64,000 nucleotides of DNA from Basidiobolus meristosporus CBS 931.73 (Eukaryota > Fungi > Basidiobolomycota): positions 88,523 to 152,522 of the forward strand of contig MCFE01000153.1 in the NCBI GenBank assembly GCA_002104905.1, in the 5' to 3' direction. The notes under the pieces were generated by a model. The model did no database searches. It saw nothing but the letters and a program-made list of their open reading frames with translations, and had not been told where the DNA came from. The position numbers and the translations under genes are program-made. How positions within the stretch are numbered: position 1 is the first letter of the stretch; each line of letters opens with the position of its first letter. Of this stretch, positions 7,380-64,000 are shown piece after piece.

Positions 7380-8995
7380 CCCTTGAGTGGTTTGATAAGT
7401 TTGAGAGAGTTAAGGTTAATGCAGGATGGGACAACAATAAGAAAGTAAGGGAGTTTGCAAGATATATGGATTGGAGGATGCAGTTAAAGACAACTGGGAT
7501 GCACTAGAAGAAGCCTACGAGGCACGCTTTCTATATGCCAAAGGATACCACTACAAAGCCCTTCTACTGTCCTCATGGAAGAAAATCAGAGAGAGCTATG
7601 AAGCCTACACTGAACTGTTTCTCCAACAAGTTTGATGTCTCCTAAAGGACAAAATTGCCAAACAACAGCTCATATGGTATTACATCATGGGCTTAGACAA
7701 CAAAATAAGACGTAGAGCATCAAAAGAACAACAGGGATGTAAAACACTGCAAGAGCTTATTGAACAAGTACAAGGGGCCATCTTGCCATGGGGGCTACCC
7801 TATAGTGATCCAAATGATTGAAGGACAGGTATCCCCTGTAAGAAAGGAAAAATTGCCTCCCTGAAAGACCGTGAGTTAGAGGAGTTACAGCAAAAGGTCC
7901 AAGAACTCTTGATCAACAATGTCCAAGAAGCCCCAAAGAAGGTGATAAACTCTGGGTAGCTGTTGTAGATCTAAAGGCCCAGGTACAAGCCCTGACCCAA
8001 CAGATGGAACAACCACGACAACAGTATCTGTGTTATGTGTGTGGAGAAGTAGGTCACCGGGCCCACAAATGTGAAAAATGGTATGGATGAGAAGCTGTAC
8101 TGGACACATAAGAGAAGAAGGCATCAAAAGACAGAGTCCCTTGCCAGGAGGCCAACAGGACTCAGTCAATCTAAGCTCTCTGGTCAGGACAGTCAAAGTG
8201 CGGAAGAAGAAGCGTCAACATAATTCTTCTAGAGAGGAGGCAAAGGAACCTGTAGTAGAGGTTCTGTCAAAAGGAAAGAGCACAGAATTAGGTGAAGAAG
8301 TACGGAATGAGCCTTGGGAAGAAGTGTTAAAGCAAACAAAGAATGCTAGCATGTCTTCCCATGGCCTATTCCCCATAATGAAGGTACTAGAGCAAACCAA
8401 GGAAACCCTCCCAATAACCAATTTACTGGGACTTGCCCCGGCTCTAGTCAAGGAACTGATAGAGGGATTGAAGGAGATAATAATCCTTCATGTCATCCAG
8501 ATGGACCTGCAAAAACCAAATAAAGGTACATACTTAAAGGTACGTATAGAGAATAAGGAGATTCTTGCCCTTATTGACACAGGATCCTCTACGTTGATCA
8601 TGTCAGAGTCATTAGCAAAACGTCTAAAATTAGACATAGTCCCCAACAACACCATTCAAGTACGGCTAGCAAATGACCAACTGGACACAATAGTAGGCAT
8701 GGTGCCTAATTGCCCCATCCAGCTAGGCAACTTGATAATACACCAAGATGTCATGGTTCTACCTGTTGCAGCCAACAACTTACTCATTGGCAAGAGTTGG
8801 TTTATCCAACATAAGATGGATATACTTTACAGTGCATCTAAACTCAGGTGGGATACCAAGAGTATCCCACTGATTTATATCACCAATGAGAGCAAGGTGC
8901 GTAGCAACAGTGTGATGATCAAAGAGGTGAAACCATTGCAGTCTCCAATCATCACACAAAATGTGATAAAAATACCACCTACTAGTAAACGGTGA
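7380..8995 (+). pseudogene. gypsy 2 gag-protease (frameshifted)
   Basis: CYVCGEVGHRAHKC knuckle at 8031-8072; LIDTGSS protease motif in ORF 8078-8995. The start is approximate. Confidence 0.85.
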
Positions 8996-8999
8996 TCTC

Positions 9000-15020: not shown

Positions 15021-18000
15021 GGTGTAACCTGTGGTGGATCTTCAGTCTTCCAAGTTTTGCCCCCAATCAGCATCAGAGTATCCCACAAGATCCTGTTCTG
15101 AATTCCTATAGGTGTATCCTAAGCAGATATCAGCAGTTCCTTCTAGGTATCCAAAAATTCTCTTAATTGCTGCAATATGATCTTATCCATAGTTCTGAAT
15201 ATGCTGACTGACAACTCCCACTGAATATGAGATATCTGAACATTTTCTAAGCATGCTATACATCAGACTGCCAGCCATAGATTAATAAGGAAAGTCAGGG
15301 CTTTCAGATGGCACAAAGCTCTCTTGATTTGGTAGAGTTTTGACCAAGTTGAGATTTTTCTCCATTGGGGTAGTGGCCAGTTTACAGTCTTCCATTTGGT
15401 ACTTCTTTAGTATATCTTGAATATACTTGGATTGGCTTAGGGTGATAGTCTGGGTACTTCTGTCTATGGAGAACTTTATCCCTAAGTATTAACTGAGATT
15501 TCCTAGATTGGACATCTTGAACTCCTTAGATAGGCTGGATTTAGTCTCTTCCAATGTTTCCAAGTTATTGGTGGCTATAGTAAGATCATCCACATATAGA
15601 GCTAATAGAGCTGGATTTGCTAAATCTGGCCTATAGTATATACTATAGTCAGCATTACTCCTTTGAGGCTCAAGTATTTCAAATAAGAATCTATGATGCA
15701 ATTCAAGGCTCTTTGTGATTGTTTGAGTCTATATTCAAAAATGCAGTTTTTGCATCCATTTGATGAATAAAAAACTTATATTTGGCAGCAATAGCCAATA
15801 TTAATCTGATGGAGCTACACTTAGCTACCAGTGCAAAGGTCTCAGTATGGTCAAGTCCTTTTGTTTGCAAGTATCCTTTGGCCACAAGTCTTGCTTTGTA
15901 TCTTTCAATTGTATCATCAGCCTTGTATTTTGTCTTAAAGACCCATCTGCATCCAATTGATTTTCAGTTGATTGGTAATTTGAACCAAGTCCCAAGTTTG
16001 CTTTGCCATTAGGGCCAGATATTCCTCAGTCATTGTAGATATCCAAAACCTTGCTGGAGGGCTATTTAGGGCTTCTTTTACAGTCTGGGGCTCAACATTA
16101 TGGACTGAATAGGCATAGGCTAAGTTTCTACCCTCATTGATGTAGTTATTTAGGCTATTTCTTGTCTGGTGGGACCTCTGAGCATTTGATTATGAAATGG
16201 TCACTACTGGGATATTTCTGGGCACTGATTTAGGCTTAACAACAATTGAAAAGTCCCCTGGAGTGACAAAACTCTCATTGTTTTGCTCTGATTCATTCCT
16301 GACAATTGGTAGACTTGAGAGTAGATTTTTGTCATCATCTGATGTCATTTTTTGTGAAAACTTGGAATATTCATCAAATAACACATCCATGGACTTTATC
16401 AGCTTCTTTGCTTTGGCATTATAGAGTCTGTATGCTTTACTCTCATTGCAGTAGCCTAAGAATATGCATTTTACACTTTTTGGCTGAAATCTTGACTGAT
16501 TTCCAGGCAGTCCTTGGCATATGCTGTACACCCAAATATTCTTAGATGCTCTGCACTTGCTCTGTATCCTTACCATGCTGCAAATGGAGTAGAGTCACAT
16601 AGTATACTGCTAGAATTCCTATTTTTAAGATATACAGCTGTGGCAGCTGATTATGCCCAAAAATTGTAGGATAATTTTTGATCATGGATCATAGATCTTG
16701 CCATATCAATTATTGATCTGTTTGCACATTCTGCTACTCTATTTTGCTGTGGGGAGTATGGTACAGTAGTCTCTTGCTTTATCCTATGAATTTTGCAGAA
16801 GTGGAAGAAGAGTTTTGAGGTATATTCTCCACCATTGTGAGGGTGTGTTTTCTTGATTATTTCACCAGTTTTTCTCTCCACCATGGCTTTAAGCTCTCTG
16901 AGCTTAGACAGAGCTTCTTCCTTTCTCTCCATGAGTTAGACCCATGTGCATCTTGTATAATCATCAATAAAAGAGACTAAATACTTCATCCTGCTTGAGG
17001 ATAATTTTGCATTGGTCCACACAGATCTGAGTAAATTAGTTCTATTTTTTTCTTAATTTTGATTAACCCAGAGCTCTTGGATGGTTGTCTGGCTTGTTTC
17101 CCATATATGCAGGCTTCAAAGTGCACCAAATTAGCTGAGGGATCAACTTTTATTCTGGAAATTAGCTGATATTTGATCATTGTGCAAACATTATCAAAAT
17201 TGATGTGTCCCAATCTCCTGTGCCAAAGCATTGGTGATTCTGCATTCAAGTTATTTATATTGGCTTCTGGATATGATGGAATACAAGTCAACTTATACAT
17301 ATTCTTATTTCTGATACGCAAAGCAATATGAGCACCATTTTGATCAGTGATCTTGCATCCAGAATTGTCAAAGCTGAAACTGAGTCCTTCTGTTGTGGCC
17401 TTGCTTACAGATAGTAGGTTCTTGGCTATTTCTGATACATAGAGCACTTCTTTGAAGGCCAGTGTATGGCTTCCTTTACTGCTTCTAAGGTTTACCTGGA
17501 GAGTTCCTTCTCCCACTGCATCAAGTGTTCTATTGTCACCCATGAAAGTCTTTTTAATTGGAATTTCTGGATATTTGGTAAAAAGCTCTTTTTGGTGTGT
17601 AAAGTGTTGAGATGCTCTAGAGTCAATATACCACATATAAGAATCCTTATCTGTGGTCATATTTAGTGCAGATATGAGTAGTCTACCTTCAGCTGTGGCA
17701 GCATTTCTATATTCAGGCTTTTTCTGCTGACTATCTCTCTTTTTCAAGCACTGGTCTCATGTATGTCCTTTCATTTTGCAGTAGTTGCAAAACAGGTTGC
17801 TATTGCCTTTAGAAGGTCTTGAGCATCTTCTTTGTTGGCTATCATTACTTATTGAAGCATTTTCTTCTTTCTTCTTATAGGCTCTTGACTTTCTTAATTC
17901 TTCATCCAGAAGCCTACCATATATGTAATTTAAGGTCAAATCTTTAGTTCTAGACTCTAGGGCTGATACAAGGCCCTGAAACTTGTCTGTCAGGCTATTC

Positions 18001-39000: not shown

Positions 39001-41205
39001 AAACGCGCACAACACGTGGTGAATACCACGCTTATTTATCCTCTCTGAATCTATGTCACAGTTGTAATAGTAACATTTATAAACCAGCCCTGGAAATTGG
39101 CTTAAATCTGCACAGCATGAATGGCTGCACCCAACTAGTAAATAAATGTATATATTTGTATACATAACAGTCGATAGATTGGAGGCAACACGACCAAATA
39201 AATAGAGCCTTTTCAAATGGTTTGGTGTAGGTAACTAAGCGAGTGTTCTGGACTCTGGCACATATGCATATCTAGTATTTGCGGTGGATACTGGCTCGGT
39301 TGAGACAAGGTTTGCAACAGCAACTATGGGCCTCTGGTCATGAAACGGAACGTGTTGATGGGTGTGTCTCTTAATCACACAATGGTGCTCTGATGAATCG
39401 TTGATATGTTAGAGTTCTTTCAAACCGTCGCAATGCCCCAGGCTTATTGTGTGTACCTTTCAGTCTCCTTGCTGATAACCTCTTTATTCACTTACAGATC
39501 GCTTATAGTTACTATGAAGTATTTTAAAGTCAAATCGCTCACGTGGACACTAGCCATTGGGTAATTTCCAAGCATCCTAACTGCTGTAGCAGTTTTGCAG
39601 CCTACTTGGCTAGAGTGTCATCGTATAGTGTTGAGCACCAAGCCTCCCTTTGTACTTAAGCCAAGGAAAATGAACACACAAGCCGTTCAAGAAGCTCCCA
39701 CGTTACGCATATAATACTTTCTCTGAACATTAATTATCTGGTAAGATCGTAACATGAACTTTGGCGAATATAGTATATCCTTGGTGTTAATTCCTAACAG
39801 TTATCAGCAGTGGCTTGAGGTAACGTCGGAAATCTTGTCATGCTAGATGCTATCTTATGTATACCCTCCAGGTGGGTTAACCTGAGAGTCTCAGTTAATT
39901 GAATGAGTTATCACCCTCGACGCACATATAGAGACACCAGGTCATAGAATATTCCGTTTGGGCATCAACACCATGCTTCATCATATTATCCTCATTGTGT
40001 GCGTGCTCATTTAGGGGGCATTATTGTGCGTTGAATTGGTCAAGAGGCAGCTACTGCTCCTCGTAATAGCACCAAGTACGGAGGTTCATGGTAGCGATGC
40101 TCAATAAATCTTGGAGGCTATTCTAGTTGAATGATGGGTTTGGATAGTAGGATCAAGAGTTGTCACTCTATATTCCAACTACTACATGCTCGCGACGAAG
40201 TGAAGTACAAACAGATCTTCAGGGAATCCTAGCTCGATCTTAGATGAGCATCAGGCTTTAGTTGTGTAGGTGTTGGTGAACTTCAAGATTTATTGATTCT
40301 TGTGACACGTTTCACGGCAATCGATGAATGCAAGATTATGGCAATATGCAGTTGCTACATGAGCTGTTTTTCTTTGACCGTGAGTTCACCGAAAAATCTA
40401 CCGGCAGTTGACTGTGAGGCACACAGTAGGCCAGCTCCAAAGGCACATACTTTACGCGTTACCCAATGTGGAGCCTGCGTGATAACCTCCTCAGAAATAC
40501 GCCTTTCATCGTTTGGGAAGGGTAATCTGGAGAGGCGTTCATAACTTATACAAAGGTACAAGATGTTATTAAATGAGCTGCAAGATGCACGCCGTTCAAC
40601 AGCAAGGGTTATAAGGGCTGGAATGGGGTAAAAATCGTGCAATATACAGCATCTTCATCCTCTGGCTTATAACTCCACCCAGAAAGTGATATAAGAATTA
40701 TGTCAGAAAATAATATGCGGGGAATCACACACATTGGTATATTGCTTTTCTCTTCCGATATGCATAGGGCCATGAACATCGAACATTCAATCGTGGTTCT
40801 GAGGATTAAACGAAACACCAGCACATATTACTACTACTATTTCTTGATCCTTAGTTCACGTGGTTGCCAGAGTAGTAGCCACCAACTCGCCAAATGAGCT
40901 CGGTCTTGGCTGTGCCTATCAACAGTAAATACGATCGATTTGTATGCAAGTACATGCAACGATACTAATCTGTTTGGCAATCCATCTGGATTGATGATCA
41001 CGGATTGTCGAGATTTAGGTTCTTGGCGTTAGACTATATATTCTGTCTTGCCTGTGCCGACTCCCATATCGAAACCGGTTATTTCTCTCAGGATTTGGCT
41101 GATCCATAATACCAAACTTGGTACATTTACATGGTATGTTGGATTTATCTTGTCATTCATACTAGCCATGATTCCTTTGCTCATTCTATGTTTTGCAGAA
41201 ACAGA

Positions 41206-44200
41206 ATGAGGCATATTTTGGCCCAGTCGGAGCAGAAATCGTTGCTAGAGGCTTTGGTTCCGTCCATTGACCGAGCCGATGAGCTCTCTGTGCTGCCCAT
41301 CATAATGGCCGCAAACATGTGTATCCTTGTATACCGATATACGAATACGCAGGATTTCACCCTTGATTTCTCGCATTCAGAGGCCCGAGATGAACCATTG
41401 CAAATCGTAATTTCTTTACGTCCCGATATGTCTGCTGCAGAACTGTTGCAATTGATTGAAGAGAGAGTGATGGTATCTCATCAAAGCAGGCTGCCTCCCA
41501 TCTCAGGTTTAGCCATCAGCCTGCATGCTGTGGATTCTGCCTACGACGAAAGCACAAACTCAGAGATACGGATGCATATCAGCTCACACAAGGATGCTCA
41601 TGAACAGGTGGTTAGTACTGTAGATGTGAGCAAGTCGTTATTAAGCAAGTGCAGTGGGGAGTCCAGCATTATAGGCCATTGGAGCACGCTACTGGAGCAT
41701 CTTGCGCTACAGCCTGATTTTCCTGTTTCACGGATTAGTATCCTCTCTCCTTCCGAAATGGAGCTTGTGACTTCGGCTGCTTGGTCATCTACCCCAGCAA
41801 TTACTGATTCACAGGTCCCGGCGCATCAGAATACCTCTGCAGATGAGATGTATCTTCATACCATATTTGAGAATACCGCTCACAAGTATCCAAATCACAC
41901 AGCAATACTATACGAAGACCAAACAGGCCAGGATAAAGCCTACACTTATCAGGAGATTGACAACGCTTCCTCTCGACTGGCCAAGCACATCAGCGATCAT
42001 TACATTACTGGACCTGGGAAGTTCATTGGCCTCTTGATGCCACAAGTACCAACAGCATATATAGCAATGCTTGCTATTCTCAAGACTGGATCGGCCTACG
42101 TTCCCATAGATCCTTCATATCCTTTAGAGCGCGTAGAATATATACTAAGAGATTCTAATGCTGAACTTCTTCTTTCTGAGAAAGCAACCGTTGAACGGCA
42201 ACTCGGCCAAGATTTAACCTGTCAAGTGTTATATGTAGACGGTTGGCTAGCCGACAAAGCCTCTCTCAACGAGTGCTTCAAACTACCATCTGGAGCGCTT
42301 CAAATGTCAGATGCTGCTTACATGATATACACTAGTGGAACTACTGGGCGGCCAAAAGGTCTGTCTTGTTACGCTTTACAGAGTTCGTCGAATTGCTGAC
42401 CATAGAGCCCTTGTACTGTAGGCGTTGTTATCGAGCATCGAAATGTGGTAAACCTCGTGAGGGCGGAGAGTGTCGTTTTCAATATGAAGACAGAAGATAG
42501 GGTGTATCAGCAGTTCTCTCTTGCATTCGATGCCTCTATCGAAGAGATATGGCTACCATTCATGGTCGGAGGTACACTTGTTCCAGCTGCACAGAAGCCA
42601 GGGCCAGGGCTCTCAGAGATTTTGGAATATAAAGGTGTGACAGTTTTGAGTTGCGTGCCTACTTTACTTGCTATGCTGTCAGAAGATGAGAAGCTGCAGA
42701 GTCTACGGTTACTAATTCTGGGGGGAGAAGCTTGTCCGAAATCATTGGTGCAACGATTTGGTGTTGGATGCCAAATCGTGAACAGCTATGGTCCGACTGA
42801 AACAACTGTAAGTGAACAATCTTGCATGAGTTAGTCTTGAGCTAATAAATAGCTTGTTATAGGTGGTCGCCACATGGAAAGTATGTAGTCCAACAGACGA
42901 CGTTGTTACAATTGGACATCCTATGCCTGGATATTCGGCATTCATTCTATCAGAATATGACCAGCTTCAACCCATAGGAGTCGCAGGAGAGCTGGTCATC
43001 GGAGGTTCCGGTGTCACGCGGGGATACCACAATCTACCCGAGTTTACAAAAAAGAAATTCATTCAACACAGTTTATTGTCCCCCGTAGGGCAACTATACA
43101 AAACGGGTGATCTTGCTCGCTATAACCAAGCCGGGGAAATTGAATATCTAGGTCGCATCGACACGCAAGTCAAGCTACGTGGTTACAGAATTGAGCTCTC
43201 TGAGGTGCATTGTTTTATTGTGTGAATCTAGTAACCCACTAACAATTATCTGTAGGTTGAATCCGCACTGCAACGCTGCAGTGGTGTAAAGGTTGCGGTG
43301 GTTGATATTCATGTAGATTCATACAATGTGGAGCATTTAATCGCCTATATCACCACAAGTACGAAAGAAAGCCTCGTCAATACCCAGGCTATAAAGGAGG
43401 AGCTTCTTAAAACTGTGCCAAACTTCATGGTTCCCTCAATCTTTCAGATTGTGCGAGATTTGCCAACACTGCCAAGCGGAAAGATAGATCGCAAACACTT
43501 ACCAAAAGTGATGGCTGGAACTCTAGTGACCGCAGAAGATGCATCAAAAAAGGTCGTTGCCCCTCGAACGCCCACCGAGACTAAACTCGTAGATATCTGG
43601 TCGCGCTTTTTCAAAAGCAACGCTATATCAGTCACGGATAACTTTTTCTCTCTTGGTGGACATTCTCTCTTGGCTGCTATGCTAGTCTCAGAATTGCGCA
43701 AAAGTGAAAATACCAAGGGTATCTCAATGGGGCACATCTATCAGTACTCTATACTCGAAAGTTTGGCCAACTTCATTGACACCTGTATCGGGCCAACGAG
43801 TGATCGGTCACCAACAGCCCACAGATCACCCATGAACAGTGGGACCGACCCGGGAAATGGAGATATTGAGAAGCTAAATAACTTGGATAGGGCGAAGTTC
43901 CCTCCTATACTTGGCTATGTTCAATCCTTTGCTCTATTACTTTGCCAGTTCGTTGCCATCTTTAGCGTGCTTCTCATTACTACACTGCCAGTATCAGTGT
44001 TATACTTGTTATACAAGTTTACCAATGTGCCAATAATAGTCGTGGTTTTCGTCTTTGCCTTGGACTTTTGCTGGATGCCCTTAATCGCAGTAATCGTGAA
44101 ATGGCTACTGATTGGCAAGTATCGCCCTGGGAAGTGGCCTCTTTGGGGATGCTACTACTGGCGCTGGTGGGTTGTCCAGAGTGTTGTGAGGGTGCTCAAA

Positions 44201-46417
44201 TTATACCTTCTCGAAGGGTCTCCGCTCCTGAATATCTTCTACAATCTTATGGGCGCCAAGGTTCACATGACGGCTTATGTTGGAACACGACACATAGGCT
44301 GTTATGATCTCCTTACTATCGAAGCCGGAGCGTCAGTGGGCTTGAATGCATACATGTACGGATACAAGGTTGAGAATGGGTGGCTTATCATAGGATCCGG
44401 GATTCGTGTGGGTTCTGGTGCACGGGTAGGGAACAAGTCGAATCTAGGCCTTAGTTCCGAGCTCCAAGATGGCGCTGATCTTGATGATTTATCTGTACTT
44501 CAAGACAAGCAAGTAATCAAAAAAAACGAAAGATGGGCTGGGTCCCCGGCTAAATTCATATCAAACGTGGAGGAGAGTGAACAGGCCACCACGTCTCATG
44601 TTGCCACATGGCTTTTTTGTTTTCTGTATTTCATCATTGCTCTGGTAGTGAACACTACTTTTGGGCTGTTGGCATCCTTGACTGGTTGGTGGCCTCGGCA
44701 TTTTATCTAATCGTCAATATGTCTGACAAGGTTTTAATCAGGTATCCTGGTGTTGGAAGTGGTCCCTATTCTACTGCCTACATTCAATCCTTATATTAGT
44801 GTGATTGTAGCTACTCCGTTTGTGACTACGGTGGCGATGATGCTTTTCTGTCTTGGGATAGTCATACTGAAGCTGATCATTCTTCCAAAGATATCTCCAG
44901 GAGAATATAAGCTGCAGAGCTTCTTCTATCTACGCAAATGGTAATCGGCTGGTGTCCTTGAGGTGGTGCTTTGCCATTTTTAAACATATTTCAATTTCAG
45001 GTGCTTGGATATATTGATGCAGATCTCTCTTGAAGTCGTGAATTCCGTCTATGGAACACTGTACGCACCTCACTGGCTACGCGCCCTCGGAGCCAAAATC
45101 GGTAAAACTTCGGAAGTCTCCACAGTTACATATATCTCCCCGAACCTTCTCAGGGTAGGGAGTGGATGCTTCCTCGCGGATTCTGTCGTGGTTGGTCCTC
45201 CACGGATCCGCTATGGAAAGATAACGCTTGACTATTCCACGATAGATGAGAGGTCTTTTGTTGGGAACGGAGCGCTGTTTCCTGCAGGCATTGTGATGGG
45301 TAAAGGCCGTATACCTCAATGCTATTGATTTTGAGTTAAACTGGATCTACATTTAGGAAGGGATTGCCTTCTTGGTGTGCTATCAACTCCTGATCATGAT
45401 GTGAGAGCTCTGGCTGATAATACCTCATGGCTTGGGTCGCCAGCCATGTTTCTCCCAAATCGGCAAGTGGCTACTACAAGCTGGCCCAAAGAACGTACTT
45501 ATGCACCCACAAACGGTTTGTATGTTGCCCGCTATCTAATAGAGTTATGGAGGGTATTCCTGCCGAACATGGTCAATATCACAACATTTGTGGTCCTGGT
45601 AGTGGTACTAGAGATTATATATGAGGGAACTTCTGATCGGGATGTTTTACCAGTCCCAGATGAGTTCTTGATGACAGACGGGTTGCTTCTCAACTTATCG
45701 CATGGTGCCTTGGTCGGCTCTTTCGTACTTGTATTTTTGATTGTGAACGGGCTTTTAGCAATAGGGGCCTGCTGCTTTGTTTTGCTTGCGAAATGGATAC
45801 TGATAGGTACTTACGCTGCTCGTGAGGCACCGCTTTGGAGTTCTTTCGTGTGGAGGTACAGCCTAGCCAGATTCGCACATTTGACACTGCTTTTTCCATG
45901 AACGATGCTTTAATGTCGGCTACATAGGACAGAGCTAGTGACCGCCTTACATGAGGGGATCGCTAGTAGACAACTCCTTCAAAGTTTGCGCGGCACCCCC
46001 TTTGTGAGCTTTTGGTTCAGGTTGCTTGGATGTCATATTGGGAAGCGTGTATGGATGGACACTCTGCAAATTACGGAGCATGATTTGATTCATATCGAGG
46101 ATGATGTCAGTATCGGTGCGGATACTATACTGCAGGTAAGTTGTTATCATCACTTCACCCATAAACGCGTCTTTCCCCATTCACTCCACCCCCTTGATCC
46201 TTAGACGCATTTATTTGAAGATCGTATTATGAAGATGGACCATTTGGTGATTGGCCGCCGATCCAATATTGGTGCCTCCTCTGTCATATTGTATGGAACA
46301 ACTTTGGAGGAGGATGTTTCCATAGGTTCTCTCTCCCTTGTAATGAAGGGGGAAACTTTGCCAACACATACCACATGGAATGGAATCCCATTGCAACACG
46401 CAAGGGATGGCTCGTAA
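41206..46417 (+). CDS. Single-module NRPS-like enzyme of the epsilon-poly-L-lysine synthetase (Pls) type: partial C-like segment, A, T, membrane segments and three tandem C-terminal repeats; about 8 introns
   Basis: A motifs YTSGTTGRPKG, FDASIEEIW, NSYGPTE, GELVIGG..RGY, YKTGDL, GRIDTQVKLRGYRIEL, PSGKIDR; PCP NFFSLGGHSLL; three left-handed beta-helix/acetyltransferase-like repeats separated by TM pairs, ending QTHLFEDRIMK..KGETLP..WNGIP. A further 5' exon is possible. Confidence 0.9.
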
Positions 46418-51696: not shown

Positions 51697-52936
51697 ATGG
51701 CCTTCATGAAGGTATGGCATTTTCTGGTCTTTTCTTGGATTCCGACTAATCTTCTTGATCTAGATTGGTGTGCTATTGCTGATGATCTATTCCGGCAGCC
51801 AGATCACTGCCGCCAGCAAAATGTGTACCTCAAAGTACTCTCCATGCTATTTCAGAGGCGTTGGCTGTGGCTCTGGTGAGTACTGCTTTGCCATCAATTG
51901 TTTATCGGACAAAAGTCTTCCAAACACCTGTTATCCTGCACCTTCGTGTGTCAGCTTCAAAGACAACTTCACAAACGCTACCGATCTTGTCATGGCATCC
52001 ACGTTCGATGGCAACCCGAATTCAGGCCCTAGATGGATGAGCCAATGGAAGAAAAACTATGCTTCCATTGAGGACGGCCAACTCGTATTAGGAATGAAAT
52101 CTTCGGGTAAAAAACACAACGGCAATTTAGTTGGCTTTGGTAGCACTGTGGTTTCCGTTAGATGGATGTTATACGGGAACGTTACTGCTCGAGTTAAATC
52201 AGCTTCTGTCACTGGTGGTGTTGTGTCGTCATTCATCATCAAGAATCCCGAAGGGGATGAGATTGACTTCGAATGGGTTGGTGGAAACCCCAATATGGTT
52301 CAAACTGACTACTACTACGATGGTATTAAGAAGTATATGCACGACGGAAGAGAAGTCTATGGACACGCCAAGAATGCGTCAGTTGGGAGCGATACTTCTG
52401 CTGGCTTCAACGAATATATGATTCAATGGGAAGAAGAACTTATCAACTTCTGGGTCAACAAGAAGATAGTCAGAACTGTTCTTAAGAAAGATACTTACAA
52501 CCATACGACCAAAACTTTTCAATATCCTGCGAGGCCAGCGCCTGTTCAACTTTCAATTTGGGACTCTAATGAGCAAGGTAAATACACTATTGATTGGGCT
52601 GGTGGGCCTACTGATTGGAGCAAACCGAATACCGAGTATAAAGTCTACTTCGAATCTATTGATATGCAATGTAAGCACAGTGAGAATCTTCCTTGGGATC
52701 CGCCCAAGATCCCTACCCTGACTTCTACTTCTATGCCAGCATCAAAATCCCCCACTTCTACAGTTGAAGCTTCTCTTATGTCCTCTTCAACTTATTCTAC
52801 TATATACAGCCCTCCTACCCATATCTCCAATTCTAAGACACATCCTACAGCTGATAAGAGCGTCGGTTCTGCACAAAAATTCAACTCTATCTTCATGTGT
52901 GCTACATTGTTGTTCACATATAATGCACTTAGCTGA
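51697..52936 (+). CDS. GH16 Crh/Utr2-like cell-wall transglycosylase, probably GPI-anchored, 2 exons
   Basis: MAFMK|IGVLLLM signal peptide, Cys-rich N-terminal module, catalytic DEIDFEWVG, QLSIWD, WAGGPTDW, Ser/Thr-rich stalk, hydrophobic tail. Confidence 0.9.
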
Positions 52937-54803: not shown

Positions 54804-55880
54804 TGTTGTAAGAGTCTTGGAGATATTGGAAGTGATTTGGAGAACAAGTAGATTATGTGGTTTTCACTTAATGATTTATTGAATGTAAAAGTAGTATTTA
54901 TACTTTTACCTGGTCTTAGCATTACAAACACGTAGAATAGGTTAAAGAAGGTCCCAAGAACATGTGTGCAAAGTTTGGGTCTGTTTGGACAACTTTGAGA
55001 ATTTTCATATTCTGGGTACCTGGTATTTTGGTGAAAATATTCCAAGTAAATCCCAACAAGGAATTTGGTCAGTATTCTCTAGGATTTGAGGGTAATGATC
55101 AAAGTGACTAAGTTAGGTGAATATTTAGGTGGAATTACAAATTTTTACAACACTCCCACCAAGCTAAATGTTCATACTGACTAGTCCTAATTTTGGCCTA
55201 AGATATTCAAACTTGTCTCTAGCTAATGGTTTGGGAAATATGTCTGCAATCATTTCATCTGTAGGACAGTAAACTAAGCTAACTAAGTTATTCTCTATAC
55301 CTTCATGTATGAAATGATGGCTAATATCTATGTGCTTAGTTCTGGCATGAAAAGTTGGATTTCTACCTAATTGTATACGTCCTTGATTATCTTGAAATAA
55401 AGTAATAGGCATTGTTTGACATAGGCCTAAATCTGTAAAAAGCTTTCTTAACCACATTGCTTCTTTTGTAGCTTCACAGGCTGCCATATACTCTGCCTCT
55501 GTGGTGGAAAGTACTACAGTTGGTTGCTTTCTTGAATTCCATCAAATTGCTCCTTTACAGTAAAGAAAGGTGTATCCTGTGGTGGATCTTCTGTCTTCCA
55601 AATTTTGTCCCCAATCAGCATCAGAGTATCCCACAAGATCCTGTTCTGAATCATTATAAGTATATCTTAAGCAGATATCAGCAGTTCCTTTTAGGTATCT
55701 AAAAATCTGCTTAACTGCTGCAATATGATCAGATCCATAGTTCTGATTATGTTGGCTGACAACTCCCACTGAATATGAGATATCTGGACGTGTTCCAAGC
55801 ATGATATACATCAGACTGCCAACCATAGATTGATAAGGAAAGTCAGGGCTTTCAGATGGCACCAAGCTCTCTAGATTTAG
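54804..55880 (-). mobile_element. 3' end of a copia (3' LTR 54804-55152, PPT, RNase H, RT C-terminus), truncated at the start of the telomeric array
   Basis: 349-bp LTR; YSDADW and ARTKHIDISHHFIHE motifs. Homology to the copy at about 2150 stops at 55880, where TTAGGG begins. Confidence 0.9.
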
Positions 55881-55885
55881 AGTTA

Positions 55886-55932
55886 GGGGAGGGGGAGACA
55901 GTCACCAACAGGTGAAATCTTTATTTCAGTTT
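55886..55932 (-). mobile_element. Telomeric LINE copy L1 (3'-terminal 45 bp only)
   Basis: ttagggg-a-ggggg-agacagtcaccaacaggtgaaatctttatttcagtt followed by tgggttaggg. Confidence 0.85.
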
Positions 55933-55938
55933 GGGTTA

Positions 55939-56313
55939 GGGGGGGAGACAGTCACCAACAGGTGGAATCTTTATTTCAGTTGAGACAAAGAAGCCAGCAC
56001 TACTGTTGTAGCTTTGATACAAGAGTGTGTAGCTGAGGGGAATTTGTAGGTAAGTCAATAAGAAGTGATGATAGCACTTCAGTGCTCAAGACACTGTTCA
56101 GTGGGAAGGGAGGCAGCAAGAGAGGTAAGTATGACTTGTGAACAACATTAATGAGTGGAATGTGATAAGGATTGATATTCATCATAAAGCAAGTGTGCTG
56201 CTGCAGATATTGCTGCCAAAGGTCTGTCAAGTACTTCAGGTAGGCCAGCTTGGGTTTTTCTGACTGCAGAATATAGTGAGTAAACTTCTTGACTTCAGGA
56301 TCTCCAAGTATAG
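55939..56313 (-). mobile_element. Telomeric LINE copy L2 (5'-truncated, about 375 bp, more diverged)
   Basis: Homologous to 56317-56695 with several substitutions; ends at ..agtatagtt|aggg. Confidence 0.9.
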
Positions 56314-56377
56314 TTAGGGGGGGAGACAGTCACCAACAGGTGAAATCTTTATTTCAGTTGAAACAAAGAAGCCAGCG

Positions 56378-59146
56378 CTACTGTTGTAGCTTTGATACAA
56401 GAGTGTGTAGCTGTGGGGAATTTGTAGGTAAGTTAATAAGAAGTGATGATAGCTCTTCAGTGCTCAAGACACTGTTCAGTGGGAAGGGGGGTAGCAAGAG
56501 AGGTAAGAATGACTTGTGAACAACATTAATGAGGGGAATGTGATAAGGATTGATATTCATCATAAAGGGAGTGTGCTGCTGCAGATATTGCTGGCAAAGG
56601 TCTGTCAAGTACTTCAGGTAGGCCAGCTTGGGTTTTTCTGACTGTAGAATATAGTGAGCAAACTTCTTGACTTCAGGATCTCCAAGTATAGTTCTCCAGC
56701 AGGAGCCAGGTGTTGTGTGGTGTGTTCTCTTCCAGGCCTTAATCAGTGGGTTGTTGCAGTTGTGAAGTCTGAGGTATAATCTGGTTCTAAGGTAGAGAAG
56801 TCTGATCTTATAGGGCATAAACCCAAAAGCACCAAGAATAGCATGTCTGTAGGGGCATTCAGGCAAATGAGGCACCAAGGAGGTAATGCACCATACTGCA
56901 AACTTGTCAAGCTTAGTGCAGTCTCTAGAAGTAAGAGAGAGAAGTGGTAAGCCAAATTCCAGGACAGGGAAGACAAACTGCTTGAGTAGAAGGAGGCAGC
57001 TGGGAGCTGAAGTTGTAGGAGAAGTAACAGCCAGTAGCTTGTGGAGTGCCTGTCTTGCCAGGAGAATTCTCTTCTTCAGGTGTGCTCCAGAGTCTATTCC
57101 AGTAGGAAGGAAAGGAAAGCCAAGATATGTAGCAGAAACCTGAGCAGGTAGAGTGGTGTTCTCCAAGGTGATGGGAGAGCCCAAAGGTACTGACTTTGCA
57201 ATGGAAAGCTGGAGATTATTCTTCTGCAGATACTGGTGGATGGTCTGGGAGTCCTGTTGCACATTGGAGGAGGATATTCTGATGTCATCAGCAAAGAGAG
57301 TAACCAGGCAGTCAGCTGAGAGTCTTGGGAAATCATTCAGAAAGATGGCAAACAGTATAGGACCAAGCACAGAGCCTAGAACAACTCCATTAGGAACTGA
57401 GAACACTGGTGATTGCTCACTTGGGTGCAGAATTCTTGCTTGTGGATCCAGAAACAGAGACCTGACAAGCAGGGTGAGAGAGGTACTGGAGAAGCATTGC
57501 AACTTGGACCAAAGCAGATTTCTGTCAACTGAATCAAAGGCCTTAGTAATATCAAACAGAACAGAGGGATACTTGCACTGGAGAGAGTGATCTTGGCTAA
57601 GTATGACTGCATATTACAAGGAGAGGCCAGGAGCAAAGCCAAACTGTGCTGGGTGAAACTTGAGGGAGTCAGAGTAGAGCTCTTGAGCAAGCAGAAGCTC
57701 AAACACCTTTCTGCAGGTGGGCAGCAGAGATATTGGCCTGTAGGAGCTAGGATCCAGGTGCTTTCCTTTACCCTTGTACAATGGCAGAAAATTTGCAAAG
57801 GACCATTCCTCAGGAGTAGAAAGCTGGGCTGAGCATTGCTGAAACAGTGGAAGCAGAAGTGCAGACATGGCCTTGGTACTAGTCTTCAGAAGCTCATAAG
57901 AGATTGTGTCCACACCTGGAGCAGTAGAGTTGGGAAGCCTCTTGAGCACATTATGGATTCTCCTTTGATCAAGTGCAAGTGGGATGGGCAGAGTCTTGAA
58001 GTCAGGATGAAAGCCAGGAGTTGAGTACTGCTTTGTAGAGAAGAAGATGTTAGCCAGCTGTTTTGTTGAAGGTAACTTCCTGGAAGAGGGCCTCATTGCC
58101 CTGTAGAGTCTTGATACTGTTCTTGTTATAGAGTTGGAAGATTGCAGAGGCAAAGAACTCATAATATGATCTCAGAGCTGAGTATGCAGAGTGTGGTGAA
58201 TTGCCTTGGAGTGGTGTATTGCTGTCAGGAGGAGTTTCTCTGTTTTTGGGTTAGGGAAACTCAGGTAGCTTTGTTGCATGGCTGAAACAATGGATTCCCA
58301 TTTTCTTGAGGTAACAGCAGTAGTCTTGCATGGCAGTGAGAGGGAGGCAGACACCAGAATCAGATGCTTCACAAAGAGCCAGGCATAGTTGAGATCATCT
58401 GGCAGAGAAAGTAGCAAACTGGCAAGCTTCAAGTAGTTCCCAAAGTATTTCTTCTGATTCTTGGTAGCTTTGTGGGTGAGCACAGTAAGTTTTGGCAGCT
58501 TCTTCTTCACAACTGGTAGCATAGAAAGGGACCAGGCTGGGTGGTCAGAGGCTCTCAAGGATCCTAGCTCAGCTCCAGAGAATTGCTGGACTTCATTCAC
58601 AAAGTAGAGGGCAGCAGCAGAAGGGCAGATCCAGTCAACACATCTTTTCTCAGATTGAGCACCTAGTGCTAGCAGATGGCTTTCTCTCAGGAAGTTCAGT
58701 AGGAATGTAGACCTTGGCTTCATTCTTGCAGTCAGAGTAGTCTTGTTCTCAGGATGGTGAATGTTGAGATCTCCAAGCAAGATAACAGGTGTTGATATAG
58801 ATTGCTGGTATTGCTGAACTTTCTGGCATATAACTTGCACTTCCTGAAGGGCAAGACTTGGAGGCAGATAGCAGAGCACCAGACTGATAGTTGGCAACTG
58901 GAGAGCAGCACAGTAAGGGGAGTAAAGAGGAACACAGAGCTGAGGAGTATTGATGGTAGAAGAGATGAAGCAGATAGAGGAGGTATTCTTTGTTCTAGGA
59001 GTAGAAAAGCAATATAGATTAGTCAAAAGTATAGAGGGTAGCTGGACATCAATCAAACACAGGAGGGAAAATCTTGAAAGAAGTCTCTCTAGAGTTGGTC
59101 TTGATGGCTGTATGCTGTTGCAGTTAAGCAACAGAACTTCAGGTAG
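56378..59146 (-). pseudogene. LINE ORF2: apurinic endonuclease plus reverse transcriptase, no RNase H; two premature stops
   Basis: One reading frame with stops at 58172 (TGA) and 57614 (TAA). APE motifs LNCNS, CYLPP, GDLN, VDW, SDH; RT motifs SYRPISLL, QFGF, FDITKAFDSVD, GSVLGPILF, FADD. Confidence 0.92.
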
Positions 59147-60654
59147 TCAGGCAGAGGTTGTAGCTTCTTCAGAGGCAGCATTGACAATGTGACCTGCAGA
59201 GTCCCAGAGCTCTTCAAATGGTGCCTCACTTAAGTCAGCAAGGAGGGAAATGGCATTATTCTTGAGGAAGTATGCCACATCATAGGAGGGGGCTTGTCTC
59301 TTGATGGCAGCAAAGAAAGACAGAATGGCAACATGAGCTGGAGGCTTGTTGAACAGTAGAGAGTCAGAGGAATCAGATTCTTCAGGCACTATCTTGAAGT
59401 CAGTTTTCAGCCAGTTAAGGTTCTTCTCCACAAAGGCAACAAATGGGTCAGCAATGTTTTGGTCTAGGATAACCTCCAGAATCTTCCCTTTTCTCCAGGC
59501 CAGGTTAACAATTCTTGAGAGCTGAATATTGCATGCCTTGAGTGCTTTCCTGATGTTGGAAATGGGAGTCCAGGGAACTTGCTTCAAGTACACCACAGTC
59601 CGGGTAGAAGCTGGTGGTAGGTTTGCTGGGGGCTTGTAAGTCCTTCTGTGTGGCAATGGAGCTGCAGTAGTCAGATTGGAGTCCACATTCTCAGTAGAGG
59701 GTTTTCTTGATGTATCTTGCTGAATGGTACTGGAGCTGGATGTGCTGATAATTCTTGCTAGAACCTTGCCTGCTTAAGTCTGAGGTATAGCTGAGGTGAC
59801 TGTAGAGGTGGTGGCAGCTGGTGCAGGTGGAGAGGCAGAAACTGAAGCAGGAACTGAGGTCACCTGGGAGAAGGCTGTAGAAGCAGGTTTTCCGGGAGGA
59901 ACAGAGTTCACTATCCAGTTGTTCTGTAAAACACTGGAGTAGCTTTTCTGTGGAACAGAATCTTGCTCTTGAACAGGAACAGAAGCAGGAGGCTGGGGCT
60001 GAGCAGTAGTGGTAAGGCAGTGGCACTCCAAGGAAGCTTTTTGCAAGGCATCTCTGGCAGTTTTCAGGGCAGTATTGGCTTCATTCTTGAGCTTCTTGCA
60101 TTGGGCATCCAGTCTTTTGTTTTCAATAGCCAGGGCAGTATTGGCAGCCTCTAAATCACAATTCTCTTCTCAATTGCAAGGAATCTCTGAAGAAATGCAT
60201 CAGTAGAAGTGCTGGCATCTGGGAGAGCAGTGGCAGGAATAGACTCCATTGACAGTGGGCTTCTTGGAGGCAAGGAAAGTGGACTGGCAGATTCAGGCAC
60301 AAAAGGAGATATTCTGGAAGGAGGAGAAGGAGTATCCAAGGCAGTAACAGAGGCAATTCTTGTTGGTGAAGCAGCAGCAGGGGAGGCAAGTCTGTTGAGA
60401 AACTGGGCAGGAGAGAGTGCTTGAGGAGAGGGAGTCTTCAGCTTGCCAAGCATGTCTTCCATCAGAGTGATACCAATATTCCTGGTGCATTTGCAGAGAA
60501 AAGTAAGCTTCCTGAGTCTGCCAGCTCTTCCATTCCTTCTGATAGTTCCTTTGTTTCCACAGTTGGGGCAAGAAATCTTCTTGACAGACTTGTCAAAGCA
60601 ATCAAGAACCTTCCTTTCAGGTGTAGTGGGCTCCTGTTGAGGTTTTGGTGGCAT
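59147..60654 (-). pseudogene. LINE ORF1 (about 500 aa): Cys-rich zinc-ribbon-like motif, Pro/Ser-rich region, coiled coil, RRM-like C-terminal domain
   Basis: MPPKPQQ start at 60654; CPNCGNK...FLCKC; 1-bp frameshift near 60155 (RIV|DLEAANTAL..); in-frame TAA at 59774; ends TTSA-TGA at 59147. Confidence 0.8.
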
Positions 60655-60779
60655 ATCCAGAGTTTCAGCTTCAAATTTCAATTTTTGAGATTTTTGGGTG
60701 ATTTTTGATGGGCGGGATCCAAATTAGGGTTAGGGTTGCGCGCTGTGACTGCTTTTTATGATCGCAAGGTCAGAACCTA

Positions 60780-61033
60780 GGAAAAAATAAAAATAGTTAG
60801 TAAAGGTGATTTAATGGATGGATGGATGGATTTGGAGTCATATTCAATCAAAAAATCAAATTGTTGACTAATTTAAAGAGGGGAAAAAATAAAAATAGTT
60901 AGTAAAGGTGATTTAATGGATGGATGGATGGATTCGGAGTCAGATTCAATCAAAAAATCAAATCGTTGACTAATTTAAAGAGGGAAAAAATAAAAATAGT
61001 TAGTAAAGGTGATTTAATGGATGGATGGATGGG
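60780..61033. repeat. About 102-bp tandem repeat (about 2.5 copies) containing (GGAT)n, between telomeric seeds
   Basis: Units start at about 60781, 60883 and 60984; flanked by (TTAGGG)2 at 60724-60735 and TTAGGG at 61034. Confidence 0.9.
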
Positions 61034-61041
61034 TTAGGGTA

Positions 61042-61568
61042 GGGGGGGAGGAAAGTCACCAAGTGGTGAAATCTTTATTTACTTATGACAAGTATCTAAA
61101 GAAGCCAAGTTAATCTGAAGTTATTCCTAGAAAGCTAGGTCTGAGAGATATCTTCCTGGTAAGCCAGGTCTGAGAGTTGAGAAGCTGAGTGGTACTATAA
61201 TTCCTAGTTAGCTAGGTCTGAGAGAGGTTTCCTGGAAAGCCAGGCCTGAGAAGTGAGAATCTGAATATATCTGAGCTAAGTTATACTGGTTTGCGGTAGC
61301 TGAATTGTGGCCGGAACGGCCAGTAGACTGGGGGAACTGAAATGAATTTCTGGGCGATCACTGGCCAAATTTACTAGGCAAATCTGGCCAATTAGCATTT
61401 CAAGGATTTCAGCCAATCAGAGCCTTTACTTTGCCCGATGGTTGATCAAGCCATCTCCCAATGAGCACACATCAATTTATTAATCAAATTTCTGCTGGAT
61501 CCAGGATTTGAACCCACAACCATGGGTATGGAAGGGTTAGGGATAACCACAAGGCTAAGTGTTCTTGG
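61042..61568 (-). mobile_element. Telomeric tRNA-derived SINE copy S1 (about 527 bp)
   Basis: A-box-like TAGCCTTGTGG (61557-61547) and B box GGTTCAAATCC (61514-61504) at tRNA spacing; non-coding body; 3' tail shared with the LINE; TTAGGG on both sides. Confidence 0.8.
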
Positions 61569-61571
61569 TTA

Positions 61572-62030
61572 GGGGGGATGATCATCACCAAAGGGTGAAA
61601 TCTTTATTCAAATAATAAATAAAGAAGCCAAGTTTGCATATGAATATCTGAGATGCAGGAAGCCTACAAGATAAACTTGGACTTTGCTGTATCCCAAATA
61701 TCCTCAATATCAAAGTCTAGAGGAGAGTGTAGCAAGACTGCTTGTTCACTGTAGTATTTCTTGAGGAAGTTTGTGACTTGAAGGGAAGGAGAGTTTTTCA
61801 ACAAGCTGGTAAATCTTTTGAGGAGTTCTTTTTCCAGAGAGAATGGCACAAAGAGTGGAATGTCCAAATGATGTCTGAATATATGCTCTGAGAGCTCCCA
61901 ATCCAGCATATTTTTGACTTCTTCTGTAAAATCTTCAACAATATCTTTGTCAAGAATAACTTCCAAGAGATCCATGGCAATGTACTGAATGTTAATAATC
62001 TTAGGCATATAAATACCTAGGTCCTTGAGG
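61572..62030 (-). mobile_element. 5'-truncated ORF1-only telomeric element (HeT-A-like), third family
   Basis: Encodes about 122 aa homologous to the LINE ORF1 C-terminus. TAG at 61664 is followed by about 90 nt of UTR and the shared 3' terminus, with no ORF2. Confidence 0.75.
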
Positions 62031-62032
62031 TA

Positions 62033-62910
62033 GGGGGGGAGACAGTCACCAACAGGTGAAATCTTTATTTCAATTGAAACAAAGAAGCCAGCGCTACTGT
62101 TGTAGCTTTGATACAAGAGTGTGTAGCTGAGGGGAATTAGTAGGTAAGTTAATAAGAAGTGATGATAGTTCTTCAGTGCTCAAGACACTGTTCAGTGGGA
62201 AGGGGGGTAGCAAGAGAGGTAAGAATGACTTGTGAACAACATTAATCAGGGGAATGTGATAAGGATTGATATTCATCATAAAGGGAGTGTGCTGCTGCAG
62301 ATATTGCTGCCAAAGGTCTGTCAAGTACTTCAGGTAGGCCAGCTTGGGTTTTTCTGACTGCAGAATAAATTCAGCAAACTTCTTGACTTCAGGATCTCCA
62401 AGTATAGTTCTCCAGCAGGAACCAGGTGTTGTGTGGTGTGTTCTCTTCCAGGCCTTAATCAGTGGGTTGTTGCAGTTGTGAAGTCTGAGGTATAATCTGG
62501 TTCTAAGGTAGAGAAGTCTGATCTCATAGGGCATAAACCCAAAAGCACCAAGAATAGCATGTCTGTAGGGGCATTCAGGCAAATGAGGCACCAAGGAGGT
62601 AATGCACCATACTGCAAACTTGTCAAGCTTAGTGCAGTCTCTAGAAGTAAGAGAGAGAAGTGGTAAGCCAAATTCCAGGACAGGGAAGACAAACTGCTTG
62701 AGTAGAAGAAGGCAGCTGGGAGCTGAAGTTGTAGGAGGAGTAACAGCCAGTAGCTTGTGGAGTGCCTGTCTTGCTAGGATGATTCTCTTCTTCAGGTGTG
62801 CTCCAGAGTCTAGTCCAGTAGGAAGGAAAGGAAAACCAAGATATGTAGCAGAAACCTGAGCAGGTAGAGTGGAGTTCTCCAAGTTGATGGGAGAGCCCAA
62901 AGGTACTGTC
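62033..62910 (-). mobile_element. Telomeric LINE copy L4 (5'-truncated, about 880 bp)
   Basis: Nearly identical to 56317-57195; capped by variant telomeric repeats at 62912-62940. Confidence 0.93.
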
Positions 62911-62940
62911 TTTAGGGGTTAGGGTTAGGGTTAGGGGTTA

Positions 62941-63465
62941 GGGGGGAGGAAAGTCACCAAGTGGTGAAATCTTTATTTACTTATGACAAGTATCTAAAGA
63001 AGCCAAGTTAATCTGAAGTAATTCATAGAAAGCTAGGTCTGAGAGATATCTTCCTGGTAAGCCAGGTCTGAGGGTTGAGAAGCTGAGTGGTACTATATTT
63101 CCTAGTTAGCTAGGTCTGAGAGAGGTTTCCTGGAAAGCCAGGCCTGAGAAGTGAGAATCTGAATATATCTGAGCTAAGTTATACTGGTTTGCGGTAACTG
63201 GATTGTGGCCAGAAAGGCCAGTAGACTGGGGGAACTGAGAGGAATTTCTGGGCAATCACTGGCCAAATTTACTAGGCAAATCTGGCCAAATAGCATTTCA
63301 AGGATTTCAGCCAATCAGAGCCTTTACTTTGCCCGATGGTTGATCAGGCCATCTCCCAATGAGCACACATCAATTTATTAATCAAATTTTGCTGGATCCA
63401 GGATTTGAACCCACAACCATGGGTATGGAAGGGTTAGGGATAACCACAAGGCTAAGTGTTCTTGG
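62941..63465 (-). mobile_element. Telomeric SINE copy S2 (about 525 bp)
   Basis: About 97% identical to S1 by eye, same 5' and 3' ends; B box 63401-63411, A box 63444-63454. Confidence 0.8.
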
Positions 63466-63468
63466 TTA

Positions 63469-63720
63469 GGGGGGAGACAGTCACCAATAGGTGAAATCTT
63501 TATTTCAGTTGAAACAAAGAAGCCAGCGCTACTGTTGTAGCTTTGATACAAGAGTGTGCAGCTGAGGGGAATTTGTAGGTAAGTTAATAAGAAGTGATGA
63601 TAGTTCTTCAGTGCTCAAGACACTGTTCAGTGGGAAGGGGGGTAGCAAGAGAGGTAAGAATGACTTGTGAACAACATTGATGAGGGGAATGTGATAAGGA
63701 TTGATATTCATCATAAAGGG
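63469..63720 (-). mobile_element. Telomeric LINE copy L5 (5'-truncated, about 250 bp)
   Basis: Matches the LINE 3' end; ends ..cataaaggg|ttaggg. Confidence 0.9.
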
Positions 63721-63723
63721 TTA

Positions 63724-63762
63724 GGGGGAGGAACGTCACCAAGTGGTGAAATCTTTATTTAC
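63724..63762 (-). mobile_element. Telomeric SINE copy S3 (3'-terminal 39 bp)
   Basis: gggggaggaacgtcaccaagtggtgaaatctttatttac, the SINE-type tail, directly abutting the telomere. Confidence 0.85.
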
Positions 63763-64000
63763 TTAGGGTTAGGGTTAGGGTTAGGGTTAGGGTTAGGGTT
63801 AGGGTTAGGGTTAGGGTTAGGGTTAGGGTTAGGGTTAGGGTTAGGGTTAGGGTTAGGGTTAGGGTTAGGGTTAGGGTTAGGGTTAGGGTTAGGGTTAGGG
63901 TTAGGGTTAGGGTTAGGGTTAGGGTTAGGGTTAGGGTTAGGGTTAGGGTTAGGGTTAGGGTTAGGGTTAGGGTTAGGGTTAGGGTTAGGGTTAGGGTTAG
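63763..64000 (+). repeat. Telomere (TTAGGG)n, about 39 perfect repeats to the window end
   Basis: Uninterrupted TTAGGG array. Confidence 0.99.

Follow-up and report, generated by a model that had tools for sequence, protein, structure and literature searches.

The end of a contig of the fungus Basidiobolus meristosporus CBS 931.73 raises the question of how retroelements come to stand in an ordered stack between the last genes of a chromosome and its telomere. The window, i.e., the whole stretch of 64,000 nucleotides that was analyzed (contig C428, positions 88523-152522), ends with the contig itself at base 64000. Between 55883 and 63765 it carries nine copies of retrotransposons without long terminal repeats (non-LTR elements), all on one strand: five long interspersed nuclear elements (LINEs), three copies of a short non-coding element which is termed SINE (short interspersed nuclear element) here, and one element with a homolog of the first open reading frame (ORF1) of the LINE only, referred to as gag-only. 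These counts and coordinates, as well as the single polarity of an array running into the telomere, had been given in a preliminary description of the sequence and hold. We interpret the elements as a telomere-specialized non-LTR consortium of Basidiobolus, stacked by successive target-primed reverse transcription from the 3′ end of the G-strand, and assign this reading a probability of roughly 70%.

The array is defined by its 3′ ends. A repeat finder (family D4) and the reading of the sequence from 55000 to 64000 delimited a common 3′ block of 41 nt, which occurs as nine tails on a single strand. LINE-type tails are located at 55891, 55941, 56319, 62035, and 63470, SINE-type tails at 61045, 62943, and 63725, and the gag-only-type tail at 61574. 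Upstream of every tail lies (T)TAGGG with a run of 5-7 G (TTAGGGGAGGGGG in copy 1), which bears out the earlier statement that all nine 3′ ends begin at such a site. The copies are separated by 0-4 additional telomeric units, the longest tract extending from 62914 to 62937, and in the terminal stretch (63763-64000) a telomeric 12-mer pattern gave 41 matches versus 0 expected. The innermost array end adjoins a truncated element that we read as Ty1/copia-like from its two ORFs, for which Pfam at E ≤ 0.01 gave no match. In 33-39 read-derived contigs the copia-like repeat runs on past 55878 with different sequence. The element was therefore cut off at this position and not interrupted, and the inner end of the array is the product of truncation and healing, not of insertion.

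The same junctions are found throughout the genome. The assembly searched comprises 89.49 Mb in 1366 contigs, and an exact 18-mer of the LINE tail has 720 matches in it, 666 forward and 54 reverse, 607 of which are preceded by TAGGG plus zero to five G. This strand bias parallels that of telomere tracts, since a telomeric pattern of 60 nt gave 5358 versus 56 matches over the whole genome; the junction and polarity first noted in the window recur genome-wide. SINE tails amount to 440 and gag-only tails to about 52. Among 79 junctions sampled at 30 chromosome ends, 67 consist of TTA plus the G-run, seven of TA, four of A, and one has none of these bases; in 57 of the 79 no further telomeric unit lies upstream. 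The sense strand ends in a C-run plus TAA without an A-run in all 79 of them, and neither poly(A) nor a target-site duplication was found. (TTAGGG)n occurs within 1.5 kb of the LINE 5′ end at about 16 of the 30 loci with full-length LINEs. On contigs C1, C2, and C25 the tails are 0.3-18 kb away from (TTAGGG)n tracts of the same contig, and on the contigs C21-C23 (~20 kb each) the tracts lie at ~19.8-20.0 kb and the tails in the last ~3 kb. Reverse-strand copies are situated near contig starts, and all placed copies are within ~20 kb of a contig end.

Subtelomeres often gather transposons, fragments of copia-like and Ty3-like elements are present in the same window, and recombination between chromosome ends could copy whole blocks. 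Ordinary LINEs and SINEs might on these grounds simply be tolerated near the ends, with break-induced replication or recombination spreading and homogenizing the arrays. The lack of poly(A) and target-site duplications, the 607 of 720 tails on TAGGG, and the uniform polarity to the telomere make such an untargeted origin very improbable, as do truncation points and element orders which vary from end to end and a telomere-complementary tail that is retained by distant relatives, including another species.

In almost every contig with a telomere, the telomere is located on the right, and the 89 Mb contain no fewer than a few hundred ends of this kind. Possible reasons are a convention of the assembler, a large number of small chromosomes, or copies that were not collapsed. 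Together with the number of contigs, the almost exclusively right-hand telomere tracts might also point to long-read assembly as the source of the pattern, through chaining or collapse of the repeats at the ends of contigs. That the stacks themselves are such an artifact is hardly conceivable: the same grammar recurs in 30 independent contigs that differ in their unique flanks and truncation points, the same junction types were recovered in short-read-derived contigs of runs X1 and X2, and they are also found in other samples and in an assembly of Basidiobolus ranarum.

The order of the copies bears on how the stacks were built. LINE fragments that lie centromere-ward of a full-length copy show 94.0% median identity to the full-length set, compared with 98.85% for fragments lying telomere-ward of it (Mann-Whitney p = 3e-4). 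The proximal fragments are accordingly older than the distal ones, which means that the arrays grow outward. The view that one burst of template jumping produced the stacks in their entirety was rejected, as this gradient from proximal to distal speaks against it; template jumping by the reverse transcriptase (RT) may contribute some junctions. In read-derived contigs many varied truncation points of the LINE are joined to the G-run of the SINE with only A, TA, or TTA in between, and read depth over the LINE 3′ end is ~10-fold that over the 5′ end. Relatives of the LINE with 48-80% protein identity were found in other samples; their contigs have the same hairpin, the C-run, and CCCTAA units at the end, and the copies are likewise stacked head to tail.

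The families comprise an autonomous LINE with an apurinic endonuclease-like (APE) domain and an RT domain and two non-autonomous partners, and this part of the preliminary description was supported. A single type of 3′ tail is common to all three. The LINE has a full length of 4.6-4.8 kb. For comparison, 30 full-length copies from other contigs were used, which are 98-99% identical and in most of which both ORFs are open. The long window copy, taken earlier as a bearer of the APE domain, does give Pfam matches to RVT_1 and Exo_endo_phos on the minus strand; unlike most other copies it is broken by frame disruptions. ORF1 encodes 502 amino acids with an N-terminal CxxC…CxC motif, a coiled coil, and a C-terminal domain; a Pfam search detected no zf-CCHC, only weak coiled-coil-like and weak N-terminal Zn-ribbon-like matches. 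ORF2 (922 amino acids) encodes the APE followed by the RT (RVT_1, E = 2.6e-25), and Pfam and PDB matches indicated no RNase H, no restriction-enzyme-like (REL) endonuclease domain, and nothing further at the C-terminus. The best PDB sequence match of the RT is L1 ORF2p. Its nearest database matches outside the family are APE-type LINEs of arthropods with at most 32% identity, and its relatives in the ESM Atlas fall into generic APE-RT clusters only, the Pfam architectures of the neighbors being uninformative.

By sequence, the N-terminus of ORF2 gave a weak APE match in Pfam and none in the PDB, and the fold is visible only in the predicted structure. The AlphaFold model of the region (pLDDT, the predicted local distance difference test, 80) superimposes on the R1Bm endonuclease (2EI9) with a Z score of 20.9 and a root-mean-square deviation of 2.6 Å over 192-195 residues, and both the TRAS1 endonuclease (1WDU) and human APE1 reach a Z score of 20.7; over the top structural matches the deviation ranges from 2.6 to 2.8 Å for about 195 residues. 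An alignment with canonical LINE endonucleases revealed that family members of only 48-62% identity retain the catalytic motifs N, Y-x-PP, GDLN-x-H, and SDH. The usual E is replaced by D, which is likewise conserved within the family.

ORF1 and ORF2 lie in the same frame and are split by a single UGA followed by CUA in 30 of 30 LINE copies [e.g., L002:4327-4335 (-)]. UGA CUA or UGA CUC is also found in three diverged relatives (L031, L032, and L033), and thus in four lineages with 48-80% identity. As an early AUG is missing from ORF2 of B. meristosporus, readthrough of the stop codon is the likely route to ORF2, and the site is a candidate for programmed readthrough that would yield an ORF1-ORF2 fusion. 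The 5′ untranslated region (UTR) consists of 1-3.5 tandem units of 102 bp, and full-length copies begin at a unit boundary; these units are reminiscent of the promoter monomers of mouse L1. The sequence beyond the ORF1 start, including the 102-bp repeats and TTAGGGTTAGGG at 60724-60735, an invariant (CCCTAA)2, is identical in 27 of 27 other LINE copies. The segment 60736-61032, formerly read as a spacer, is consequently the LINE's own 5′ UTR.

On the sense strand the tail of all families is composed of AAUAAA, GAUU, a 5-bp stem with a loop of 4-5 nt, a spacer of 7-9 nt, 5-7 C, and UAA. The putative hairpin has the form UCACC-loop-GGUGA with a conserved stem and a variable loop. Since this module is common to all three families, all of them should be templates for the RT of the LINE. 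Further tail variants (e.g., GATGATAA-CCACC/TCACC types and a type with a 5-nt loop) occur at L010:~894, L024:~624, L002:~1485, and L017:~495, which indicates that more than three families or subfamilies take part in the arrays.

The SINE measures 529 nt and has no ORF of 80 amino acids or more. Over 41 nt its tail matches that of the LINE at 78% identity, and the hairpin is the same. Its 5′ end contains box A-like (TTAGCCTTGTGG) and box B-like (GGTTCAAATCC) motifs. A tRNA origin of the head was considered and found no support: ARAGORN reported nothing on the sense strand, either in the window or for the isolated head at relaxed thresholds; the head had no Rfam match at E ≤ 10, and no Rfam family matched anywhere in the 64-kb window. 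The earlier label SINE is kept for a short, non-coding element with a LINE-like tail in which neither Rfam nor ARAGORN recognized a tRNA: judged from its sequence it rests on size, the lack of an ORF, the common tail, and the box A/B-like motifs, and the element is not demonstrably tRNA-derived.

The gag-only ORF of the window encodes a domain with 29% identity (E = 2e-11) to the C-terminal part of ORF1 of the LINE and stops 90 nt short of the tail, which leaves no room for an RT downstream. The element is roughly 1 kb long, a B. meristosporus copy of ~0.97 kb being present in L013, and a profile-free search of 1.8 billion proteins retrieved a relative of 269 amino acids. On the contig encoding this relative, which belongs to an assembly of B. 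ranarum, the gag-only element is complete within ~1.2 kb, with a tandem-repeat 5′ UTR (L038:1-220), one ORF, and a tail of hairpin and C-run plus TAACC, after which unique DNA follows.

Target, polarity, tail, outward age order, RT and APE domains that are intact, and a gene for telomerase reverse transcriptase (TERT) are direct observations, from which we infer the following cycle. The 3′ end of the G-strand, either terminating in TTAGGG or eroded down to few homologous bases, would pair with the CCCUAA end of the element RNA. The RT would extend this primer along the C-run and onward through the remaining RNA, and the cDNA would become the new G strand, leaving the element with its 3′ end centromere-ward and its 5′ end outward. 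Telomerase would then add TTAGGG onto the new end, and repeated cycles would build up a stack of uniform direction in which age decreases toward the outside. Copying from a primer paired with CCCUAA yields TTAGGG+GGGG+element, which is exactly the junction seen. The interstitial tracts are very short next to the ~40 units of a terminal tract, and truncated copies abut the next tail; both favor very short or eroded ends as the substrate rather than random nicks in long duplex tracts.

Several points weigh against this reading. Among the 720 LINE tails 113 have no exact TAGGG(G0-5) prefix; at the sampled loci these are near-variants with CTAGGG or with a G-run that is interrupted or 10 long. The placement relative to contig ends covers only part of the 720 copies. 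The hairpin is backed by one compensatory pair only; it is plausible, not proven. AAUAAA is located ~35 nt upstream of the tail, so that transcripts may be polyadenylated, in which case a start at CCCUAA would be internal. The element was present in no RNA run, and the 3′ end of the RNA is deduced from DNA junctions alone. Finally, the APE domain is conserved across lineages, and end-priming by itself would not call for this.

The conserved endonuclease points to another possible source of the primer. As in TRAS/SART, the APE might nick the G strand at a fixed site in duplex repeats, followed by ordinary endonuclease-dependent target-primed reverse transcription in which the natural 3′ end is not involved. 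Fold and motifs are maintained in lineages that are only 48-62% identical, the best structural matches of the model include the endonucleases of R1Bm and TRAS1, and orientation and TTAGGG junction are the outcome expected of a nick in the G-strand. However, the R1/TRAS match is tied with that of APE1 (Z scores of 20.7-20.9) and is uninformative on specificity, and random nicking in tracts of ~40 units should leave long interstitial tracts on the flanks of each insertion, whereas 57 of 79 junctions have no telomeric unit apart from that paired with the tail, some have TA or A only, and truncated copies run straight into the next tail. The strict order of old proximal and young distal copies also fits terminal addition better than nicking. 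We regard nicking of internal repeats as unlikely. As far as the primer itself is concerned, priming on the natural G-strand 3′ OH, as put forward in the preliminary description, is a proposal, and the conserved catalytic motifs allow for a TRAS/SART-like nick. Of that interpretation as a whole, families, polarity, junctions, and TERT stand, end-priming stays a proposal, and capping says too much.

The preferred reading, addition at the G-strand 3′ end, includes telomerase as a partner. A TERT RNA-binding domain was detected in the genome with 40.5 and 34.7 bits, above the Pfam cut-off, and together with the long terminal TTAGGG tracts this agrees with the proposal that the elements act alongside telomerase. 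The terminal tracts comprise about 40 units, and every assembled end seen is capped by (TTAGGG)n and not by an element, so that the term capping was an overstatement. Telomere-like motifs are found inside the elements, among them the invariant (CCCTAA)2 of the LINE 5′ UTR. CCCTAACCC is part of ORF2 in a relative (codons FPNP; L033:3568 and 5636) and occurs in the LINE of B. meristosporus as well, and it is present near the SINE 5′ end (window 61533-61541). One junction in a contig of a relative uses the copy inside ORF2, and a truncated copy of one relative starts exactly there. Such internal motifs may be seeds for re-capping or re-priming.

The Basidiobolus system shares features with several telomeric retroelements. 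Like TRAS1/SART1 of Bombyx mori, it is based on an APE- and RT-encoding LINE which coexists with telomerase and is joined to telomeric repeats in one orientation, and the modeled endonuclease fold is very similar (Z scores of 20.7 for 1WDU and 20.9 for 2EI9). The sense strand of TRAS is reportedly located on the C-rich strand, as in the Basidiobolus LINE. TRAS and SART differ in having poly(A) and in lying inside long TTAGG tracts, whereas the Basidiobolus elements end in a C-run plus UAA at junctions of usually one unit or less, have no detected CCHC knuckles in ORF1, and include SINE-like and gag-only partners. With HeT-A/TART/TAHRE of Drosophila the system has in common the terminal head-to-tail arrays with 3′ ends centromere-ward, an autonomous element with a gag-only partner sharing its 3′ end, 5′ truncations, youngest copies outermost, and 5′ UTR repeats. 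Drosophila, in contrast, has neither telomerase nor short repeats and its junctions are oligo(A), while Basidiobolus has TERT, (TTAGGG)n, and a non-coding SINE-like third member. The Athena/Coprina elements of rotifers, basidiomycetes, and other groups reportedly bear the reverse complement of the telomeric repeat at their 3′ ends, which may anneal to G-overhangs (Gladyshev and Arkhipova 2007); they coexist with telomerase, and fungi are among their hosts. The Basidiobolus 3′ end likewise carries the complement of the telomeric repeat. In Athena/Coprina, however, it belongs to a Penelope-like RT without endonuclease, and in Basidiobolus to a LINE-type RT (best PDB match L1 ORF2p) with a conserved N-terminal APE.

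MoTeR, FoTeR, and Cnl1 are likewise fungal non-LTR elements tied to telomere repeats; their 5′ region contains tandem repeats, and 5′-truncated copies are numerous (PMC12857005). These encode a C-terminal REL endonuclease (PD-(D/E)XK) with a CCHC motif and cluster with CRE/SLACS (PMC12857005), whereas the Basidiobolus LINE has an N-terminal APE and no REL; the claim that the APE type sets the system apart from the fungal telomeric elements is supported by this comparison. Cnl1 was considered as an APE-type precedent in fungi and discarded, as the FoTeR paper groups it with MoTeR in the REL-endonuclease CRE set (PMC12857005). Hebe of Adineta vaga, a member of the jockey clade, is an APE- and RT-encoding LINE enriched at chromosome ends and chained with other telomeric elements; it differs in having a poly(A) end, in being generally not joined to telomeric repeats, and in the absence of 5′ truncations (PMC2861651).

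The features of the array are listed in Table 1. Proximal to it, ordinary genes extend up to ~53 kb of the window and encode FIT, peptidase S28, DAK, an AMP-binding/PP-binding enzyme, and GH16. The AMP-binding and phosphopantetheine-binding ORFs, similar to a non-ribosomal peptide synthetase, are located at 41131-44710 (+), ~11 kb from the array, and the GH16 gene at 51770-52936, 3 kb from it. Fragments of LTR retrotransposons are situated in the AT-richer first 20 kb at 8078-11757 (+) and 16986-17747 (-), with aspartyl protease, integrase, and Pol_BBD/gag_pre-integrase domains.

Table 1. Features at the telomeric end of the window, in window coordinates.
Feature	Position	Strand	Basis or remarks
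Truncated Ty1/copia-like element, last non-array DNA	55164-55878	-	ORFs 55164-55487 and 55542-55865, read as copia-type pol
LINE copy 1, 3′-terminal ~49 nt only (tail and hairpin)	55883-55931	-	Sequence reading; repeat family D4
LINE copy 2, 3′ fragment of ~380 nt	55936-56315	-	Median identity 95.6% to full-length copies; family D2
LINE copy 3, near full length (4.7 kb), frame disruptions	56314-61032	-	Domain matches; repeats (D6)
LINE copy 3, RT	56378-58162	-	
LINE copy 3, APE	58172-59131	-	
LINE copy 3, ORF1 pieces	59147-60681	-	
LINE copy 3, internal (TTAGGG)2	60724-60735	-	
LINE copy 3, 5′ UTR with 102-bp monomers	60780-61030	-	
Lone TTAGGG unit, junction of LINE 5′ end and SINE tail	61034-61039	+	Sequence reading
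SINE copy 1, full length (529 nt), no ORF	61040-61568	-	Repeat families D3, D7
Gag-only element, 5′-truncated (462 nt)	61569-62030	-	ORF 61664-62029; homology to ORF1 C-terminal domain
LINE copy 4, 3′ fragment of 0.88 kb	62031-62913	-	98.2% identity
Interstitial telomeric tract, about 4 units	62914-62937	+	
SINE copy 2, full length	62938-63465	-	Repeat families D3, D7
LINE copy 5, 3′ fragment of 255 nt	63466-63720	-	98.4% identity
SINE copy 3, 3′-terminal 45 nt	63721-63765	-	Family D4
Terminal (TTAGGG)n tract (238 bp), up to contig end	63763-64000	+	

Telomere-specialized retrotransposons are central to ideas on the relationship of telomerase and retroelements. The known cases are poly(A) LINEs of the APE type in insects, and elements without endonuclease or of the REL type with telomere-like ends in rotifers, fungi, and protists. 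A search of the literature on telomeres and retrotransposons of Basidiobolus or the Zoopagomycota yielded nothing relevant and no paper describing the system, and a telomere-specific SINE is absent from a review of telomeric retrotransposons. The Basidiobolus system unites an APE-type LINE, a telomere-complementary tail, and gag-only and SINE-like partners, in coexistence with TERT. Since the elements are young, numerous, and for the most part intact, and the fungus can be cultured, the system is experimentally tractable, and the question whether the RT of the LINE uses the chromosome's own G-strand end as a primer by base pairing, like telomerase, and which role the APE would then have, can be tested. 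A broader idea, which we offer as possible but doubtful, is a telomere of two layers: a telomerase cap, and beneath it an APE-type LINE with its dependents serving as a telomerase-like device for end extension or break healing, with the CCCUAA tail of the RNA as the alignment template. In this view the elements appear to be made for a return to telomerase, their 5′ ends starting with CC(C) and the LINE 5′ UTR carrying the invariant (CCCTAA)2. If true, such a telomere, in a fungus whose assembly contains several hundred chromosome ends, would be a present-day intermediate linking telomeres made by telomerase alone with those of the Drosophila type.

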